A DNA stretch of 64,000 nucleotides from Eukaryota sp. TZLM1-RC (taxonomy: Eukaryota > Protista > Metamonada: BaSk clade): NCBI GenBank assembly GCA_040285825.1, contig JAUPSS010000003.1, forward strand, positions 2,914,001-2,978,000, given 5' to 3'. Below are positions 2,724 through 61,782 of this stretch, piece by piece; within the stretch, counting starts at the first letter, position 1; each line of letters starts with the position of its first letter. A model generated the notes under the pieces. It was not told the DNA's origin. It saw nothing but the letters and a program-made list of their open reading frames with translations, and did not search any database. A program made the position numbers and the translations under genes.

Positions 2724-4160
2724 TCAACATGACGTCATTGAAGAATCAGAGTTCAAATAGGTTTCAACAGGGGAACAAGGGTCTTCTTGGTTGTCGGAAA
2801 TCTCATCAAGGTCAATTTCAAGTTCAACTTCACTATTTTCTGAATCATGTTTCTCTTCTTTTTCTCGTTTTTTCGGAAGTTTGTCAGCAGTGAAAAGATA
2901 CATAAGGCAGGCGAGGATCAACAAAAAAGTGGTGAAGACCCAAGGTAATTTTGGTTGAATATCAAACAATATCGTCATAAAAATTGGCGTAGTTCTACCC
3001 AAAGCACTGATTGACATCAATATGCCCATAATTTTTCCCTTATTGCTATTGTCTGCCCAAAATGAACATAACGCTGAAGAACATGACATAATTGCTGCTT
3101 TTGTCATTGAGAGTGGGATAAATAGAATAAACATGATAAAAACATTGAATGAAAAAAACTCTAGTAATGAAATGATAATAGCTATTAAACAAGAAACAAA
3201 GGTTGCAAAAGCTGCAGCCTTTGCTTCAGAATTAAACAATGCTACAAACTTCTTGATGAGCTTCCACTGAAAGATAACGATGGTGAGCCCACTAAATGCC
3301 ATCATAAAAGAGTAATGAAGTGTGGATCCATTCAGTACGTATAGTAATGTTAAAGGAACTATACTTTGCATATTAGAGATCATGATCCAATTGAAAAAAG
3401 TAGCCAGGAGAACAATCTTGAAAGCTCCCCAGTCTCTTTCGATTTCCTCAGAATCAGCTTGACTTTCTTCATCATTCTGAGCCCCTATTTTGGGAGGATT
3501 CTCAAACCAACCAATCGCAATAACTAATGCAAGGAACACAAAGCAAGCCCCTACCAAAGCTGCCGTTCTAAAGTCAAAGTAATGGTAAACAAAGCCTCCA
3601 ATTACGGGGCCTAAGCTCAAAGCAACTCCCTGTGAAGCACCAGCAAGCCCCATGTAAGATGACCTCTCTGCAGGCAAAGTTACATCGGCCAAGTAAGCCT
3701 GGCAGACAGATGTAAGAGAGGCAAATACCCCAGATAAGGCACGTACCATTGTTAAGTGAAGAACAGTTGTTGCAAATCCTGTCAGGATTAAGCACACGTT
3801 GAGTCCAATCAAGGAAAGAATTATTACAACACGACGACCTTTTTTGTCCGAAATCTTTCCTAAAATAGGGCTAAATATAAACTGAGTAACGGCCAATATT
3901 CCTAAAACTAGTCCGACATGGAAGGCACTATCGCTAAATTCACCAATATATGATGGGAAAAGAGGATTTACAATAGAAAAACCAAGAAAGGCTACAAATA
4001 GAGAAAGTAGAGTAATGAACATCCCCTTCTTCCGTATTTTTAGAAGCTCTGGGGACAGTTGTGGAGAGGAAGGACTGACATTGGCATAAACTTCACCAGT
4101 GGGGAGACATGTAGAGTCTGATCGACGACGGTCAAAGCTTGCGAGCTCACGGCTGTTCAT
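2724..4160 (-). CDS. MFS transporter, TetA/DHA1 (MFSD10-like)
   Basis: 478 aa, about 12 hydrophobic segments, motif A 'GKISDKKGRR' and 'QAYLADVT..ERS.YMG'. Confidence 0.9.
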   Translation of the reverse strand: MNSRELASFDRRRSDSTCLPTGEVYANVSPSSPQLSPELLKIRKKGMFITLLSLFVAFLGFSIVNPLFPSYIGEFSDSAFHVGLVLGILAVTQFIFSPILGKISDKKGRRVVIILSLIGLNVCLILTGFATTVLHLTMVRALSGVFASLTSVCQAYLADVTLPAERSSYMGLAGASQGVALSLGPVIGGFVYHYFDFRTAALVGACFVFLALVIAIGWFENPPKIGAQNDEESQADSEEIERDWGAFKIVLLATFFNWIMISNMQSIVPLTLLYVLNGSTLHYSFMMAFSGLTIVIFQWKLIKKFVALFNSEAKAAAFATFVSCLIAIIISLLEFFSFNVFIMFILFIPLSMTKAAIMSCSSALCSFWADNSNKGKIMGILMSISALGRTTPIFMTILFDIQPKLPWVFTTFLLILACLMYLFTADKLPKKREKEEKHDSENSEVELEIDLDEISDNQEDPCSPVETYLNSDSSMTSC

Positions 4161-4219: not shown

Positions 4220-4519
4220 ATGCCTCTCCTATTAATCGAGTGTTGTCCAGAGTTCAAGGGGGTTTGTCAAGACCTCATTGCTCAACTACGAAGTCGATTT
4301 CCTGGTCGGATCTCTGTAAAATACAATGTTGATTATCTGGAAGATGATATTGATCCTCGCCCTTCTACCTTTGCTGTTATTTGGGAATTAACTAACGAAC
4401 TACTCTACCATTCTAATGAACGATGTGCATCATTTACAGAGATGGAAAATATTTTGAAACCTCTCATTGAGCCTCCAGAAAATCCCCTAAAACCAATGGC
4501 AGGAGGAGGGTGAGTTTAG
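4220..4519 (+). CDS. Small Rdx/SelW-like protein, predicted selenoprotein with penultimate Sec (...PMAGGG-U-V*)
   Basis: TGA at 4511-4513 is followed by GTT TAG and then a SECIS-like hairpin. 'LRSRFPGRISV...FAVIWE..ELLYHS' resembles the SelW/Rdx fold. A paralogue lies at 61492..61782. Confidence 0.75.
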
Positions 4520-4530
4520 GATGTTCCAAT

Positions 4531-4618
4531 GTAGGAAATGTGAACTCTGCTTTATGTGAAGTTGGGGTAGAAAACCTAAACGGCCTTCCCTGATTGATAA
4601 GCGTTCTCCATTTCCTAT
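4531..4618 (+). promoter_or_regulatory. SECIS element (GUGA core)
   Basis: Long helix I (TAGGAAATG..GAAC..GCTT / AAGC GTTC..CATTTCCTA), GTGA 4556-4559, AAAA 4571-4574, TGAT 4591-4594. Helix II is imperfect. Confidence 0.7.
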
Positions 4619-4663
4619 CTCCAAAGCATAAATTATGTAAATGTATAGTTTTATTCAATTGCT

Positions 4664-4972
4664 TTAGAAAACACCAGCACCTAATTGACGAATAATGTTG
4701 CCACTGTCACCAATCCAATTGTCAGTTTCGTCATCTTGTACTCTGAGGACGGGGACTGTATAGACACCACTTTGCTTATACAAGTAAACACGAAGTTCAT
4801 CAGATCTGCTCTGGGGAACATTGACGATATCATAATCAACGCCTTGTTCATCCAATGCAGTTCGCACTTTCGCACAAAAAGGACAAAATGGGAATTGGTA
4901 CAAGGTAATCTGCTTTGCAGAACAAGCTACAAACACTGAAAGAATTGAGACAATGAAGAGGAGAGAACGCAT
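4664..4972 (-). CDS. Glutaredoxin/GST-N-like protein with N-terminal signal peptide
   Basis: CPFC active site, TVP cis-Pro motif, IGDS motif and a hydrophobic leader MRSLLFIVSILSVFVACSA. Confidence 0.85.
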   Translation of the reverse strand: MRSLLFIVSILSVFVACSAKQITLYQFPFCPFCAKVRTALDEQGVDYDIVNVPQSRSDELRVYLYKQSGVYTVPVLRVQDDETDNWIGDSGNIIRQLGAGVF

Positions 4973-5211: not shown

Positions 5212-5282
5212 GCGTTAGTAGTACAGTGGTAGTATGCCTGCCTTCCAAGCAGATGACCCGGGTTCGATTCCCGGCTGACGCA
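5212..5282 (+). tRNA. tRNA-Gly (anticodon TCC)
   Basis: Acceptor stem GCGTTAG/CTGACGC, D arm GTACAGTGGTAGTAT, anticodon loop CT-TCC-AA, T arm CCGGG-TTCGATT-CCCGG. Confidence 0.95.
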
Positions 5283-37018: not shown

Positions 37019-37215
37019 ACTGTAGTTTAATAATAGATTAAAATTATTATTTGCTATTCCAAAATTATAAGAATGAAAAGAATACAGCAGGCTCTCAGTT
37101 CATAATTCCAAAATGAATTCAACCAGGAATTGACAGTGTGACACATCATCAATTGAGTCGGGAAGGGGAAACTTCTGATTCCAATAACCTAATTCGACTC
37201 ATACTTCACCTGAGC

Positions 37216-38737
37216 ATGACATACGATTACGATCTCATAGTAATAGGTGGTGGTAGTGGTGGCCTTGCTGCTGCTAGAGCTGCTGCTGGTTTCAAGAAAA
37301 AAGTCCTTTTGCTTGACTACGTTCACCCTTCACCAAAATCAACAACTTGGGGTATCGGTGGCACATGTGTTAATGTTGGCTGCATTCCCAAACGTCTGAT
37401 GCACGATGCTGCTGGAATTGCTGAAACCATCCGTGACTCAAATGCACATGGTTTTGAAAACACTTCAGATCCTACCGTCAACTGGACTACTCTCGTTAAT
37501 AACATTGATTCCTACATTCGCAGACTCAATCGAGCATACATCACCGAATTAAAGGTACAGTACTTTGCACAAGACTAACAACCAGTGGAATGACTACGTC
37601 GATTACCTTAATGCCGAAGGTTCTTTCCAGGGGCCCCATGAAGTACTAGTCAAGTATGCCGATCCAACCAAAGAAGCCGAAGTCTTTTCAGGAGAGCACA
37701 TTGTCATTGCTGTAGGTTCTCGTCCCTTCTATCCAGATATTCCTGGTGCTGAACTTGCCATAACCTCTGATGATATTTTTTGGTCAAAAACACCTCCCGG
37801 AAAAACATGTGTTATTGGAGCTAGTTACATTGCCCTAGAAAGTGCTGGTTTTCTCACTGGTCTTGGATTCGATGTCTCTGTTATGGTAAGAAGCATAATT
37901 CTTCGTGGCTTTGATCAACAGATTGCCGGAATGATTGGAGCTTATATGGAAAACCACGGTGTTAAATTCCTTAAGGGTATGTCACCTACAAAGCTGGAAG
38001 AAGTAGAAGATGGCAAGATCCGCGTTCACTATCAATCTGGTGAAGAGTCTCACTCTGAGATCTTTGATACTGTTATGTTTGCAACTGGAAGAACTCCGAA
38101 CACATGGAGACTCAACCTTCAGTCTGCCGGTGTACGTTTCCATAAAGGAAGTGGTAAGATTATGGTCAACAAGGAAACGACCAATGTCAAACACATTCAT
38201 GCTGTGGGAGATGTAGTTAAGGGAGGGCTTGAGTTGACCCCTGTGGCCATCCAAGCAGCCAAACTTTTGATCAATAGACTCTATGGTAATGAGACCAGGG
38301 GTTTTAATTACCGTATTGTGCCTACAACAGTGTTTACCCCTCTTGAATATGGTTCTTGTGGTATTTCTGAAGATGATGCTGTTGCTCAATATGGAGAGGA
38401 AGCCCTCAATATTTATCATCAAAACTTCCAGCCGTTAGAATGGTCTCTTCCTGGAAAGAGTTCCTCTGCTTGCTATGTATGTCTTTATTCATTCTCACCA
38501 TAGGCCAAACTCATATGTCTAAAGGAAGAAAACGACCGTGTAATTGGTTTCCATTATCTTGGTCCATCAGCTGCTGAGGTCACTCAAGGATACGCTGTTG
38601 CTATGAGAATGGGTGCAACGAAGCTTGACTTTGATTGGACTCCTGGTATTCATCCTTCTAATTCAGAGACATTTGTTGGCTTGTCCATTACCAAAAGTAG
38701 TGGGGAATCTGCCAAGAAGGGAAATTGCTGAGGTTAG
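37216..38737 (+). CDS. TXNRD: High-Mr thioredoxin reductase, selenoprotein (C-terminal GNC-U-G); introns 37555..37585 and 38477..38503
   Basis: GGGSGG, CVNVGC and GIHP..SE motifs. The spliced frame ends GGA AAT TGC TGA GGT TAG (TGA at 38729-38731), with a SECIS downstream. Confidence 0.95.
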
Positions 38738-38776: not shown

Positions 38777-38847
38777 AAACCAGGTCTAAGTGATGATTGC
38801 TTTCTCAATACTCTTGAAGTAGGAAAGTGATTTGATGAACTTGGTTT
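38777..38847 (+). promoter_or_regulatory. SECIS element, type II (GUGA core)
   Basis: Helix I AAACCAGG/CTTGGTTT, GTGA 38790-38793, 11-bp helix II GATTGCTTTCT/GGAAAGTGATT, AA 38807-38808, mini-stem TACT/AGTA, TGAT 38833-38836. Confidence 0.9.
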
Positions 38848-41326
38848 GGCTTCGCTTTTTTTATTGATAAAAGAATTGTTATTGTTTGTTCAATCAACTA
38901 TAACACAAAATTTCAACAATTACAGTCATCTGCGACCAGTCTTGTAGTCAATTGAGTAGACAGTATTTCAAGAATTCCTTAACTTTTTAATTTTAATTTC
39001 CAATTGTTTATTATTTGGTAGAAAGCCTGTTCAACTTGTTATTGGTGATCTTTATAATCCTTGAATTCTTCTCTTGATTTGTGCAGAATTTATAACGAAT
39101 TAAGAACAATGTTTTTGGCTAATTTACTTGACATTGTTTTTTTCTTAGAAAGCATATTTTTTGTAGCACCGAATAAGTTGGTCTTGATTTTCAGAATTTT
39201 TTTTATTTATTTATCGAATTCTCCAGTTTCCACAATAGTTGATGGTATTGAAATTCAAGCCAAATTATATTCAATTGATGCTATTCGTCATTTGGGTTCG
39301 TTTTTAGGAAATAATGATGAAATTACCAAAAAATTGTTTGAAAAGTTGAACTCAATTTCGGACAAAATTGACCGAATGATGAATTTAGATATAAAAAAAC
39401 ACATCAAATTTACCATTATAAGACTGTGTTTTAGTTCCAATTTTAATCATATATTTCGATCTACAAATCCTCTCGTCACTAGACCTTTGGCTCAGAAGTT
39501 TAATGAATCACGTGAAAAAGTTCTGTCACAATTACTGTGATGTAAAATGTTCCAAATTCCAGACCATGCTTACCTTAGTCCACATTATGGTGGTTTAGGG
39601 TGGACGAAGGCTTCTATTCTTACCTCGTGTGCTTTTGTTGGTGGATGCAGAAATGCAATCTTTGAGTTTTCCGAAAGATTTACAGATTGGGAAGATTTAT
39701 TGATGGCAACGCAAACTTCCACTGTTTTTGCATTAAATGAAGAAATTTCAAAAATTGATGCAGAAAAATGGGGTCGATGCTTTCCCCAATAATTCAATGG
39801 CAATATTCCAGAAAAGAATGTTTTAAATTTAAAATACACTCTTCGAACATTACAGAGACGATTGACTGGAATGTATGAAAATGATCTTTATAATAATATA
39901 TGCAGCTCGTCTGTTTTAAATCAAGATCTTCACTCATTGTTATTGGAAAAGGGTGTTTGTGAAAACAAGTCGTCAGATTCTTCACTTTTTGTAACCATTG
40001 TACCACGAAGATTTGGATTGTGTGCCACTAATGAAGCATTTGTAACAAACATGAAATTATATTTGAATATTCTCATTAATCAATTATTATCAAAAGAAAA
40101 ATGTATTTGTTCGAATTCACCTCAACTCACTTTGCGCCATGCTCTGAATTGTTCTAAATTGATAACTTATCGTACTTCATTACATGATGCTGTTAGAGAC
40201 ACTGTTTTCAATATGGCACAAACTGCAAGAATATCGTGTATCAAAGAGCCTCTGCTGATGGAAACACTTTCTCTGAATAATTTTGGTTCTGATGATAGAG
40301 ATGATGTATATTGTGATTGGATTGAGAACTCTGAAGCTATTGTTGACTTTGTCTCATGTAATGTTGCAAATGATACTTTGGTTCACAGAAGAAAACTTAA
40401 TCCTGTGAGTGCTCTTGATTTCAAAGCAAAAGAGAAACATAGAAAATATGATAAAGCTATTGAAGAGGCTAATGCTGATAGAAATACACAGTTAGTTTTT
40501 ATTGCTTTCCCATTTACGATAAACAGAAGACTATCAGTTGAAGCAGAAACTTTTTTGAATGACTTCCAAAAAAATGGTGCAAGAAAAAACAATGAAAAGA
40601 TTTGATATTGTTTTATGGCGTTCTCGGATACAATTTGCCATTATTAATAGATTACCTCGGTTCTTCAATCGAATAAGAGAAGCTTTAGCTAGACAGCAAG
40701 CAGATCAAGATTTTGTAGAGGAAATCCTGGTTCAATGATATTCGTCCCATCAGTTATGAATTAATTTATTTAAATGTGCATGTTCAATAAATATATTTAT
40801 TTAAACGTTTTTTATTATTAAATGAGCTAAATACTACGACAATTCAAAAATGCTTTATCCAACTACTCAATGCTGCTTTACACAAAATCGAGGATTTAGT
40901 GAAACCAATTCCACCCAAATCAGCAGAACAAAATAAATGACTTCAAATGAAAGATTCATTTACTTCTAATAAAGAAGAACAAAATTCGACCCGAAGTTTG
41001 TTGAAAGATTTGCAAAAAGCAAGAGATACCGAGGGGTTTGAGTGATTGAGTGATGCTTGAAGAAAGTAACATTTCAAATGAAAACGGACTTTCTGGTATT
41101 ACTATCGATCATGTAAAAGCCGCAATTATTTCTTCAGAGGATTGTCTTGGTTCATTAACCAAATTTTTCAACAAAATATTGACTGGTCAACTCAGATATC
41201 CAGAAGAATTAAGAAGTTCTCGTTTGACTGCACTTGTCAAAAATTCAAAAATGGATGTTCGACCTATTGCAGTCTCTGAGAGCTTACAAAATATTTTTCT
41301 GCGTCTTGCTTGAGCAGGTTCAATAA

Positions 41327-41467: not shown

Positions 41468-44083
41468 ATAAGAAAGCAAAAAGGATTTTATTACCCTTTC
41501 AATATGGAATTAATACCACTGATGGAGTCTCTTCAGTGATATTTGCTACTGATCTATTATTTCGCCAAAATGAATCCAATGTTTGTATGTCATTGGATTT
41601 TAGTAATGGATTCAATTCACTCAGTCGTCGCAGTATCCATGGTGCTTTATTGCAATATATGCCTGAATTAATGCCGTATTTTCAATCAACATATAGCACA
41701 TATTCTAATTTACATTTTGGTAATTCCATTTTGAGTTCATCAAGTGGTGTAAAGCAAGGAGATCCGTTAGGACCTCTTTTGTTTTGTTTGGCCATTCATC
41801 CTATTTTAATGCAAATTCAAGAGATGTTTCCTTCGCTAAAAATGACTGCATATATGGATGATGTTGTGCTTATTGGTGATTTAAGTATTGTGAAACACAA
41901 AACTGTATGTTTTAAAGAATTATTTACCAAAATTTGTCTCCGACTTAATTTACTTAAATGTGTTTTGTTATCAAATTCTCCAGTTTTCACAATAGTTGAT
42001 GGTATTGAAATTCAAGCCAAATTATATTCAATTGATGCTATTCGTCATTTGGGTTCGTTTTTAGGAAATAATGATGAAATTACCAAAAATTGTTTGAAAA
42101 GTTGAACTCAATTTCCGACAAAATTGACCGAATGATGAATTTAGATATAAAAAAACACATCAAATTTACCATTATAAGACTGTGTTTTAGTTCCAATTTT
42201 AATCATATATTTCGATCTACAAATCCTCTCGTCACTAGACCTTTGGCTCAGAAGTTTAATGAATCACGTGAAAAAGTTCTGTCACAATTACTGTGATGTA
42301 AAATGTTCCAAATTCCAGACCATGCTTACCTTAGTCCACATTATGGTGGTTTAGGGTGGACGAAGGCTTCTATTCTTACCTCGTGTGCTTTTTGATGGTG
42401 GATGCAGAAATGCAATCTTTGAGTTTTCCGAAAGATTTACAGATTGGGAAGATTTATTGATGGCAACGCAAAGTTCCACTGTTTTTGCATTAAATGGAGA
42501 AATTTCAAAAATTGATGCAGAAAAATGGGGTCGATGCTTTCCCCAATCATTCAATGGCAATATTCCAGAAAAGAATGTTTTAAATTTGAAGTACACCCTT
42601 CGAACATTACAGAAACGACTGACTGGAATGTATGAAAATGATCTTTATAATAATATATGAAGCTCGGCTGTTTTAAATCAAGATCTTCACTCATTGTTAT
42701 TGGAAAAGGGTGTTTGTGAAAGTAAGTCGTCAGATTCTTCACTTTTTGTAACCATTGTACCACGAAGATTTGGATTGTGTGCCACTAATGAAGCATTTGT
42801 AACAAACATGAAATTATATTTGAATATTCTCATTAATCAATTATTATCAAAAGAAAAATGTATTTGTTCGAATTCACCTCAACTCACTTTGCACCATGCT
42901 CTGAATTGCTCTAAATTGATAACTTATCGTTCTTCATTACATGATGCTGTTAGATACACTGTTTTCAATATGGCACAAACTGCAAGAATATCGTGTATCA
43001 AAGAGCCTCTGCTGAAGGAAACACTGTCATTGAATAATTTTGGTTCTGATGATAGAGATGATGTATACTGTGATTGGATTGAGAACTCTGAAGCTATTGT
43101 TGACTTTGTCTCATGTAATGTTGCAAATGATACTTTGGTTCACAGAAGAAAACTTAATCCTGTGAGTGCTCTTGATTTCAAAGCAAAAGAGAAACATAGA
43201 AAATATGATAAAGCTATTGAAGAGGCTAATGCTGATAGAAATACACAGTTAGTTTTTATTGCTTTCCCATTTACGATAAACAGAAGACTATCAGTTGAAG
43301 CAGAAACTTTTTTGAATGACTTCCAAAAAAATGGTGCAAGAAAAAACAATGAAAAGATTTGATATTGTTTTATGGCGTTCTCGGATTCAATTTGCCATTA
43401 TTAATAGATTACCTCGGTTCTTCAATCGAATAAGAGAAGCTTTAGCTAGACAGCAAGCAGATCAAGATTTTGTAGAGGAAATCCTGGTTCAATGATATTC
43501 GTCCCATCAGTTATGAATTAATTTATTTAAATGTGCATGTTCAATAAATATATTTATTTAAACGTTTTTTATTATTAAATGAGCTAAATACTACGACAAT
43601 TCAAAAATGCTTTATCCAACTACTCAATGCTGCTTTACACAAAATCGAGGATTTAGTGAAACCAATTCCACCCAAATCAGCAGAACAAAATAAATGACTT
43701 CAAATGAAAGATTCATTTACTTCTAATAAAGAAGAACAAAATTCGACCCGAAGTTTGTTGAAAGATTTGCAAAAAGCAAGAGATACCGAGGGGTTTGAGT
43801 GATTGAGTGATGCTTGAAGAAAGTAACATTTCAAATGAAAACGGACTTTCTGGTATTACTATCGATCATGTAAAAGCCGCAATTATTTCTTCAGAGGATT
43901 GTCTTGGTTCATTAACCAAATTTTTCAACAAAATATTGACTGGTCAACTCAGATATCCAGAAGAATTAAGAAGTTCTCGTTTGACTGCACTTGTCAAAAA
44001 TTCAAAAATGGATGTTCGACCTATTGCAGTCTCTGAGAGCTTACAAAATATTTTTCTGCGTCTTGCTTGAGCAGGTTCAATAA

Positions 44084-61262: not shown

Positions 61263-61400
61263 TTTGCTTTTTTTAAAAAGTTAAACAAATCTTTTTGTAC
61301 TTTAAAATTCCATGTTATAAGTTAATTATTGCTATTAAATTTTGATTATTAATCTTATTATTGCACAAACACATGACAAATTTAGAGTAGCATGTAACAA

Positions 61401-61474
61401 ACTAAATCTCCGCATCATCATAGAAAGATCCCAAAGGGTTTGTCTTAAATGAATCACATAGCTTGAGATTCAGT
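61401..61474 (-). promoter_or_regulatory. SECIS element, type II (GUGA core)
   Basis: Minus strand reads ACTGAATCTC-aagctat-GTGA-TTCATTTAAGAC-AAA-CCCTTTGGG-ATCTTTCTATGA-TGAT-gcg-GAGATTTAGT, with a 10-bp helix I. Confidence 0.85.
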
Positions 61475-61491
61475 AAGTATAAAAACTTCAC

Positions 61492-61782
61492 CTAGGCTCA
61501 GGCCTTACAACTCTTCGTAGGGTCTTTAGGAGGTTCAATGATCGGCTTTAATATAGACTCCATTTCCTCAACGGTTGCCACTCTGTTTGTCGATTCAAAG
61601 AGAAGCTCGTTAGTCATTTCCCATACTACAGAGAATACATCTGGTCTTGGTTCTATATCATCTTCTAGGTAATCAACATTGTACTTGACAGCAATTCTAC
61701 CGGGAAATCGACGTCTCAAAGAGGAAAGGAGGGACAAGCAGTCGTCCTTCAAATAGTTGCAAACTTCTATTAAGAGAAGCAT
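61492..61782 (-). CDS. Small Rdx/SelW-like protein, predicted selenoprotein with C-terminal CxxU (...SCKA-U-A*)
   Basis: TGA (61500-61498) GCC TAG followed by a SECIS. Paralogue of 4220..4519 (shared RFPGRI.VKYNVDYLEDDI.PRP). Confidence 0.8.

Follow-up and report, generated by a model that had tools for sequence, protein, structure and literature searches.

A putative selenoprotein family with a predicted Rdx-like fold and a C-terminal penultimate selenocysteine in skoliomonad metamonads

In thioredoxin-fold proteins the CxxC or CxxU site is located at the junction of beta1 and alpha1. SelK and SelS span the ER membrane once, by means of an N-terminal transmembrane helix, and in high-Mr thioredoxin reductase (TrxR) a penultimate selenocysteine (Sec) in the C-terminal GCUG arm works against an N-terminal redox centre. 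Small lineage-restricted selenoproteins are known from protists, namely Sel1-Sel4 of Plasmodium and SelTryp of kinetoplastids. The algal SymSEP is also a small selenoprotein of restricted distribution (PMC7539508). The Rdx family is defined by the motifs CxxU and TGxFE[IV], and SelK and SelS by a C-terminal segment rich in Gly, Pro, and positive charge, with Sec two or three residues from the end (PMC10650576). As for SECIS elements, GUGA_AA cores are a lineage-specific variant documented for green algae and sponges (PMC3473315).

Among metamonads, the surveyed literature reports selenoproteins in Spironucleus only, which uses Sec, including a SelW1 with Sec at the canonical position, and in which no canonical SECIS was found (PMC2874811, PMC6397501). 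Sec machinery is reported in Monocercomonoides (PMC6759080). The Skoliomonas genome paper (PMC11316075), whose Skoliomonas sp. GEMRC corresponds to 'Eukaryota sp. GEM-RC1' below, does not mention selenoproteins, and the literature search returned no description of skoliomonad selenoproteins or of the family considered here.

The gene studied here, copy A, belongs to a window of 64,000 nt (the whole stretch of DNA that was analysed; assembly GCA_040285825.1, contig JAUPSS010000003.1). Judging from its sequence, copy A is likely a real, previously unannotated, and intact selenoprotein gene in which the UGA at 4511-4513 encodes Sec.

Copy A, its relatives, and the shared gene ending

The coding features of copy A and its paralogue, in window coordinates, are as follows.

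4220-4510, + strand: coding part of copy A, 97 codons up to the TGA
4511-4513, + strand: in-frame TGA, the proposed Sec codon of copy A (residue 98, penultimate)
4514-4519, + strand: GTT (Val99) and TAG (4517-4519), the proposed true stop of copy A
61492-61782, − strand: paralogue copy B, 94 codons, TGA at 61500-61498, GCC, and TAG at 61494-61492

The original prediction gave copy A a TGA-codon-TAG ending and the residues Cys8, Cys9, and Cys16, all of which are present in the reading frame 4220-4510 and the TGA-GTT-TAG behind it. The protein would end with PMAGGG-U-V, and its annotation is a 97-aa protein ending at the TGA. The complete tail, EPPENPLKPMAGGG-U-V, is rich in Pro and Gly and only about 15 residues long.

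Upstream, an MFS-transporter gene (2724-4160, − strand) is divergent from copy A at a distance of 60 bp. It is ~50% identical to its GEM-RC1 orthologue (L003 10001-12177), and its next-best matches are bacterial Tet-type MFS transporters (27-30% identity). Downstream, a glutaredoxin-like gene (4664-4972, − strand; Pfam Glutaredoxin, E 1e-15) with a CPFC motif and an N-terminal signal-peptide-like segment is convergent with copy A. Since the stop codons of these 2 genes are only 144 nt apart and the copy A SECIS occupies most of this gap, their 3' UTRs probably overlap. The sole Rfam and ARAGORN match within the window is a tRNA-Gly (UCC) at 5212-5282 (+ strand).

According to tblastn against the window, copy A has one paralogue, copy B, matched at 61782-61501 (− strand) with 57 of 89 identical residues (64%, E 6e-33). 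It was expected 57 kb from copy A with the same type of ending and a diverged tail, and is found there with SCKA-TGA-GCC-TAG, i.e., the tail SCKA-U-A. All protein queries for copy A used the 97-aa piece preceding the TGA. When 1.84 billion representative proteins were searched exhaustively with HMMER and the A and B profile, a third member emerged (P0002, 95 aa, E 4e-24). It corresponds to GEMRC1_003663, annotated as a hypothetical protein in the sister genome GEM-RC1. The original prediction depended on homologues retaining the TGA; the gene of this protein ends with MSK-TGA-TGT-TAA and thus keeps the TGA-codon-stop ending, together with a homologous SECIS. Since A and B are 64% identical to each other and 41-46% identical to the GEM-RC1 protein, they are, by sequence identity, old in-paralogues with the single GEM-RC1 gene as their co-orthologue.

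Other searches extend the family no further. The three-sequence profile returned A, B, and P0002 only, the word-index protein search returned the window's own proteins and no further relative, and 2 metagenome scans, based on peptide patterns and on a custom codon pattern (checked to match all three known members), yielded zero relatives. Proteins P0003-P0005 from the exhaustive HMMER search were rejected as relatives, being long repetitive sequences that score via many weak repeats. Pfam and NCBIfam contain no match to copy A even at E 10, and the PDB sequence search gave no relevant match and no Rdx chain; weak caspase-7 rows (E 0.15 or worse) were dismissed as noise. No homologue with Cys aligned to the Sec was detected in the protein libraries or metagenomes searched. 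Synteny is also absent among the 3 loci: the GEM-RC1 gene has other neighbours, gene order around the MFS transporter is not kept between the 2 Skoliomonas genomes, and no family copy is located within 10 kb of the GEM-RC1 orthologue of this transporter. The claim of a new family agrees with the lack of relatives in very large protein libraries and metagenomes and of any profile match. The family appears to be undescribed and so far to occur only in skoliomonad metamonads, with 3 members in 2 sister genomes. It would add a selenoprotein family missed by annotation pipelines, because its genes are deposited as hypothetical proteins of 94-97 aa that stop at the TGA.

A TGA followed by one codon and a stop is found in all 3 members (tails GGG-U-V, CKA-U-A, and MSK-U-C), and the last residue differs among them (V, A, and C in A, B, and GEM-RC1, respectively). 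Across the pairs, dN varies from 0.32 (A vs B) to 0.57, with dS saturated and not computable for all of them. Low dN combined with saturated dS points to purifying selection acting on the protein, with no neutral similarity left, and since synonymous sites are saturated, the shared TGA and SECIS features would not be leftover ancestry.

A rather unlikely explanation is that the TGA is an ordinary stop, with the downstream stop and the hairpin being coincidental or playing some other part in the 3' UTR, for example in mRNA stability or in forming the 3' end. TGA is indeed a common normal stop in this genome (8 of 19 long ORFs), and hence the case for Sec rests on the extension and the SECIS rather than on the codon itself. 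Coincidence, however, would be needed three times in spite of saturated neutral sites, with the probability of a stop at the second codon past a stop being about 0.069 per lineage at this base composition.

The 3' UTR hairpins and the thioredoxin reductase control

The window contains a TrxR gene with its own SECIS, listed here together with the elements of copies A and B.

37138-38737, + strand: TrxR gene with the redox motif CVNVGC and the domains Pyr_redox_2 and Pyr_redox_dim
38477-38503, + strand: TrxR intron, 27 nt, GT..AG
38729-38737, + strand: TrxR gene ending, GNC-TGA-GGT-TAG
38777-38847, + strand: predicted TrxR SECIS, form-2, GUGA instead of AUGA, core 61 nt past the TGA
4531-4618, + strand: whole predicted SECIS of copy A, with a long helix I (4531-4552 with 4599-4618)
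4556-4560, + strand: 5' SECIS core G-UGA-A of copy A, preceded by AU (AUGUGA)
4561-4570 with 4585-4594, + strand: helix II of copy A, 9 of 10 standard pairs and one U.U
4571-4574 and 4575-4583, + strand: apical part of the copy A SECIS, unpaired AAAA followed by a mini-stem CC/GG with loop
4595-4598, + strand: 3' SECIS core UGAU of copy A, the second of two tandem UGAU
61394-61477, − strand: predicted SECIS of copy B, GUGA at 61457-61454 and UGAU at 61417-61414

The TrxR domains were matched exon by exon, with the exons not joined. In its hairpin (z −2.8), helix I is followed by an unpaired ..AGUGAU / UUGAUGA.. core, a helix II of 11 bp, then a CAA bulge, and finally a mini-stem. By these features the gene is a positive control, indicating that Sec decoding with a GUGA-type SECIS operates in this genome.

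Judging by its motifs, the element of copy A is a form-2, GUGA-type SECIS as well. In the unconstrained MFE fold of 4514-4620, exactly UAUGUGA and GAU stay unpaired between helices I and II. The SECIS-like hairpin of the original prediction is thereby recovered at 4531-4618 with the same end coordinate. Its helix II had been described as the weakest of the three, which holds only in part: copy A does have the weakest constrained energy among the window's 3 SECIS, but helix II forms 9 of its 10 pairs once the second UGAU is taken as the core, and its apparent weakness results from the use of the first one. The constrained energies are −14.9, −17.8, −17.6, and −22.3 kcal/mol for A, B, GEM-RC1, and TrxR, respectively. 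The elements of B and GEM-RC1 (the latter with its core at L001 3328-3372) follow the same plan as A, with C-AAA and mini-stems CCC/GGG or CUG/CAG.

The spacing between the UGA and the GUGA is 45 nt in A, 43 nt in B, and 42 nt in the GEM-RC1 gene. For a mammalian reporter, the minimum UGA-SECIS spacing is about 51 nt or more. The observed 42-45 nt are below this value, which counts against the Sec reading; if functional, such distances would be informative about the spacing limits that apply to Sec insertion in eukaryotes.

How specific these hairpins are was estimated with a constrained scan, in which the core is kept unpaired, the first pair of helix II is forced, an unpaired AA is placed at 10-14 nt, and a single hairpin and helix I are required. 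Among 57 candidate cores on both strands of the window, the elements of TrxR, B, and A rank 1, 3, and 8, respectively. Dinucleotide shuffles (n=30) contain, per 128 kb, 1.37 candidates that reach the score of A and 0.37 that reach the score of B. Five other candidates of the real window score as well as A's; they sit within coding sequence or repeats and served as the real-sequence background rate. For a SECIS-like candidate on the right strand at most 100 nt past a given TGA, the chance is then ~0.1% according to the shuffles and ~0.4% according to these five. A pairing descriptor that demands 9 or more of the 10 helix II pairs, applied to both strands, selects 3 sites, namely A, TrxR, and one other.

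As for the 5 candidates themselves, two identical ones (41042-41082 and 43799-43839, + strand, −17.2 kcal/mol) belong to a family of tandemly repeated elements at ~39.2-46.5 kb. They were dismissed as chance or as part of a repeated element, each overlapping an ORF start ~440 nt past a TGA-terminated ORF. Another is located in a Fanzor-like region (57502-57446, − strand), one is antisense to the TrxR 5' exon (37209-37148, − strand), and one lies within the TrxR coding sequence (38289-38347, + strand).

Unconstrained folding energies are not significant in comparison with shuffles (z from −1.8 to +0.8). Rfam reports no SECIS match either, whether applied to the whole window at the gathering threshold or to the two 3' UTRs with E values of up to 10. 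Its silence on A and B is uninformative, since the same search also misses the SECIS of the TrxR control at E 10. A covariance model trained on the TrxR SECIS alone (R1) was too sequence-specific and missed the elements of A, B, and GEM-RC1. A second model (R2) was built from the B and GEM-RC1 elements only and applied, unfiltered, to a total of 185 kb of strands. Its best non-training match is the hairpin of A (4548-4605, 14.7 bits) with an E of 0.67 for the whole search, which alone is not significant; the match falls in the predicted 150-nt stretch and has the register derived by hand.

Since a MAFFT alignment of the 4 SECIS misaligned TrxR and the 3' halves, two-sequence and model-based alignments were used instead. 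The three family elements, aligned by way of the model, are invariant only at AUGUGA, AAAC, and UGAU, with invariant columns making up 16 of 37 unpaired positions vs 2 of 24 paired ones. Pairing is kept in 88.9% of cells, a share that drops to 31-46% after the partners are shifted by 1-3 columns. The covariation check proposed along with the original prediction gave compensatory changes across the 3 members, with both partners changed in 11 of 12 helix II pairs and none of 500 shuffles reaching any of the four measures, although these counts are small (three sequences from two sister genomes, in an alignment fitted to the structure).

The ordinary-stop explanation agrees with the hairpin energies and the absence of Rfam matches, as well as with about five comparable candidates elsewhere in the window, none of which is at all likely to be a SECIS. 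On the other hand, the invariant AUGUGA/AAA/UGAU is the SECIS signature, it is found at a fixed 42-45 nt together with a covarying helix II, and the architecture equals that of the TrxR SECIS in the same window. The argument that retention of the UGA position and the SECIS in diverged copies reflects selection on Sec survived every test that was run, being supported by the third member, the saturated dS, the helix II covariation, and the detection of A's hairpin by the model of B and GEM-RC1.

A further possibility, which we regard as improbable, is that the family consists of selenoproteins but copy A is decaying or non-decoding, with only B and the GEM-RC1 gene making Sec protein. The energy of −14.9 kcal/mol against −17.8 (B) and −17.6 (GEM-RC1), the mere 14.7 bits with R2, and a tail that carries 2 inserted residues and lacks a Cys close to the Sec fit such a scenario. 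Yet the ORF of copy A is intact and has 31 of 31 family-invariant residues, its dN is 0.32 with saturated dS, all SECIS core motifs are intact with 9 of 10 helix II pairs when the correct UGAU is taken, and the TGA-codon-TAG frame is retained in spite of the tail indel. With copy A read as an intact selenoprotein gene, free-living anaerobic metamonads of the BaSk clade would be users of Sec with GUGA-type SECIS elements.

Predicted fold and placement of the selenocysteine

AlphaFold2 models of A and the GEM-RC1 protein, based on the three-sequence alignment, reach a mean pLDDT of 80.5 and 80.0, respectively. The predicted elements of copy A are beta1 (3-8), alpha1 (10-26), beta2 (32-37), beta3 (50-55), beta4 (60-66), and alpha2 (72-83), followed by the conserved linker EPPxxPxK (84-91) and a disordered, low-confidence tail. 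Both models have an identical beta-alpha-beta-beta-beta-alpha order. Foldseek matches thioredoxins and 2obk, weakly. According to an independent search of 48,161 representatives, 2fa8 and mouse SelW take ranks 1 and 2 for both models, and Rdx proteins align to the models over the full length, whereas thioredoxins do so only from about residue 20. The structure search thus supports an Rdx/SelW-like thioredoxin-type fold for copy A and agrees with the earlier suggestion that the copies share the same fold.

All 31 invariant residues of the family are present in A, including Cys9, FPG 27-29, PRP 46-48, EPP 84-86, P89, and K91. Cys9 lies between beta1 and alpha1 in the model, and from the nearly 1:1 register (model 1-85 to mouse SelW 2-86) we infer that it takes the position of the SelW Cys. 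The tail of copy A has a 2-residue insertion and lacks a Cys near the Sec.

Under the preferred reading, in which copy A encodes a selenoprotein, the ribosome would read the UGA at 4511-4513 as Sec, directed by the 3' UTR SECIS at 4531-4618, then add one Val and stop at the TAG, resulting in a 99-residue protein. The product would be a compact Rdx-type (SelW/SelT/SelH) domain with Cys9 only at the beta1/alpha1 site and the Sec at the tip of a 15-residue tail behind the conserved and presumably rigid Pro-rich linker EPPxxPxK. It would most likely be a soluble thiol/selenol oxidoreductase, in which the tail Sec would swing onto Cys9 of the same or a partner molecule and form a selenenylsulfide. 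In copy B (CxxU) and the GEM-RC1 copy (U-C), a local selenenylsulfide would also be possible. In A, where no Cys is near the Sec, no local selenenylsulfide could form, and the protein may instead rely on Cys9, on Cys8 or Cys16, or on a partner. A difference in chemistry between the lone Sec of A and the CxxU of B, as proposed, is plausible.

Copy A most likely belongs to a new selenoprotein family that combines an Rdx-like fold with a relocated, C-terminal penultimate Sec. We would give about even odds to a reading in which an Rdx/SelW-type domain moved its Sec, reducing CxxU to a single Cys and placing the Sec on a swinging arm behind a conserved polyproline-like linker, which would make a new selenoprotein architecture. 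In this reading the tail chemistry diversified within one genome to a lone Sec (A) and CxxU (B), and the sister species has U-C. The family would represent a natural experiment on catalytic Sec placement, with lone Sec, CxxU, and U-C on one conserved thioredoxin-like domain.

Comparison with known selenoproteins

In fold, the closest described proteins are those of the Rdx family (SelW, SelT, SelH, SelV, and bacterial SelW-related proteins; PF10262), whose thioredoxin-like beta-alpha-beta-beta-beta-alpha order the new family is predicted to share. Sequence similarity to them is undetectable, and the Sec is penultimate on a C-terminal tail. The defining Rdx motifs are absent, since F, L, or L is found where SelW has Sec: Cys9 alone is invariant, with these residues three positions on, so that neither CxxU nor CxxC is formed, and beta3 reads TFAVIWE, VFSVVWE, or VFCLVQE in place of TGxFE[IV].

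The tail of copy A resembles another group, with PMAGGG-U presumably being similar to the C-terminal end of human SelK. The SelK-like tail of the original prediction amounts to a local resemblance only, in a Pro/Gly-rich segment with a near-terminal Sec. The protein as a whole is not SelK, because it has a globular alpha/beta domain (residues 1-83 of the model) and no transmembrane helix, with no hydrophobic stretch of transmembrane length being present. That copy A is a divergent member of a named family, either SelK/SelS or a canonical Rdx protein such as SelW, is therefore highly improbable, even though its tail, rich in Pro and Gly and with a near-terminal Sec, is reminiscent of the SelK/SelS description (PMC10650576) and its fold best matches SelW-related proteins. 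Both options conflict with the features above (no transmembrane-length segment, no CxxU/CxxC, and no TGxFE[IV]), as well as with blank Pfam and NCBIfam results at E 10 and PDB sequence and exhaustive HMMER searches that contain no Rdx protein.

As for the small protist selenoproteins (Sel1-Sel4, SelTryp, and SymSEP), they are likewise short, taxonomically narrow, and known from UGA and SECIS alone, and some have a C-terminal Sec; none has a sequence relation to the metamonad (BaSk clade) family.

TrxR differs from copy A in its unrelated fold and size, and copy A has no flavin or NADPH domain. The TrxR arm is nevertheless similar in layout, carrying a penultimate Sec on a flexible C-terminal extension of a scaffold that keeps an N-terminal redox Cys, and the TrxR of the window (GNC-U-G-stop) uses the same type of SECIS as copy A. 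The 3 family members differ in the Cys next to the Sec, which is absent from A, forms CxxU in B, and directly follows the Sec (U-C) in the GEM-RC1 copy. Among the systems compared, the C-terminal arm of TrxR provides the best analogy for how the copy A protein may work.
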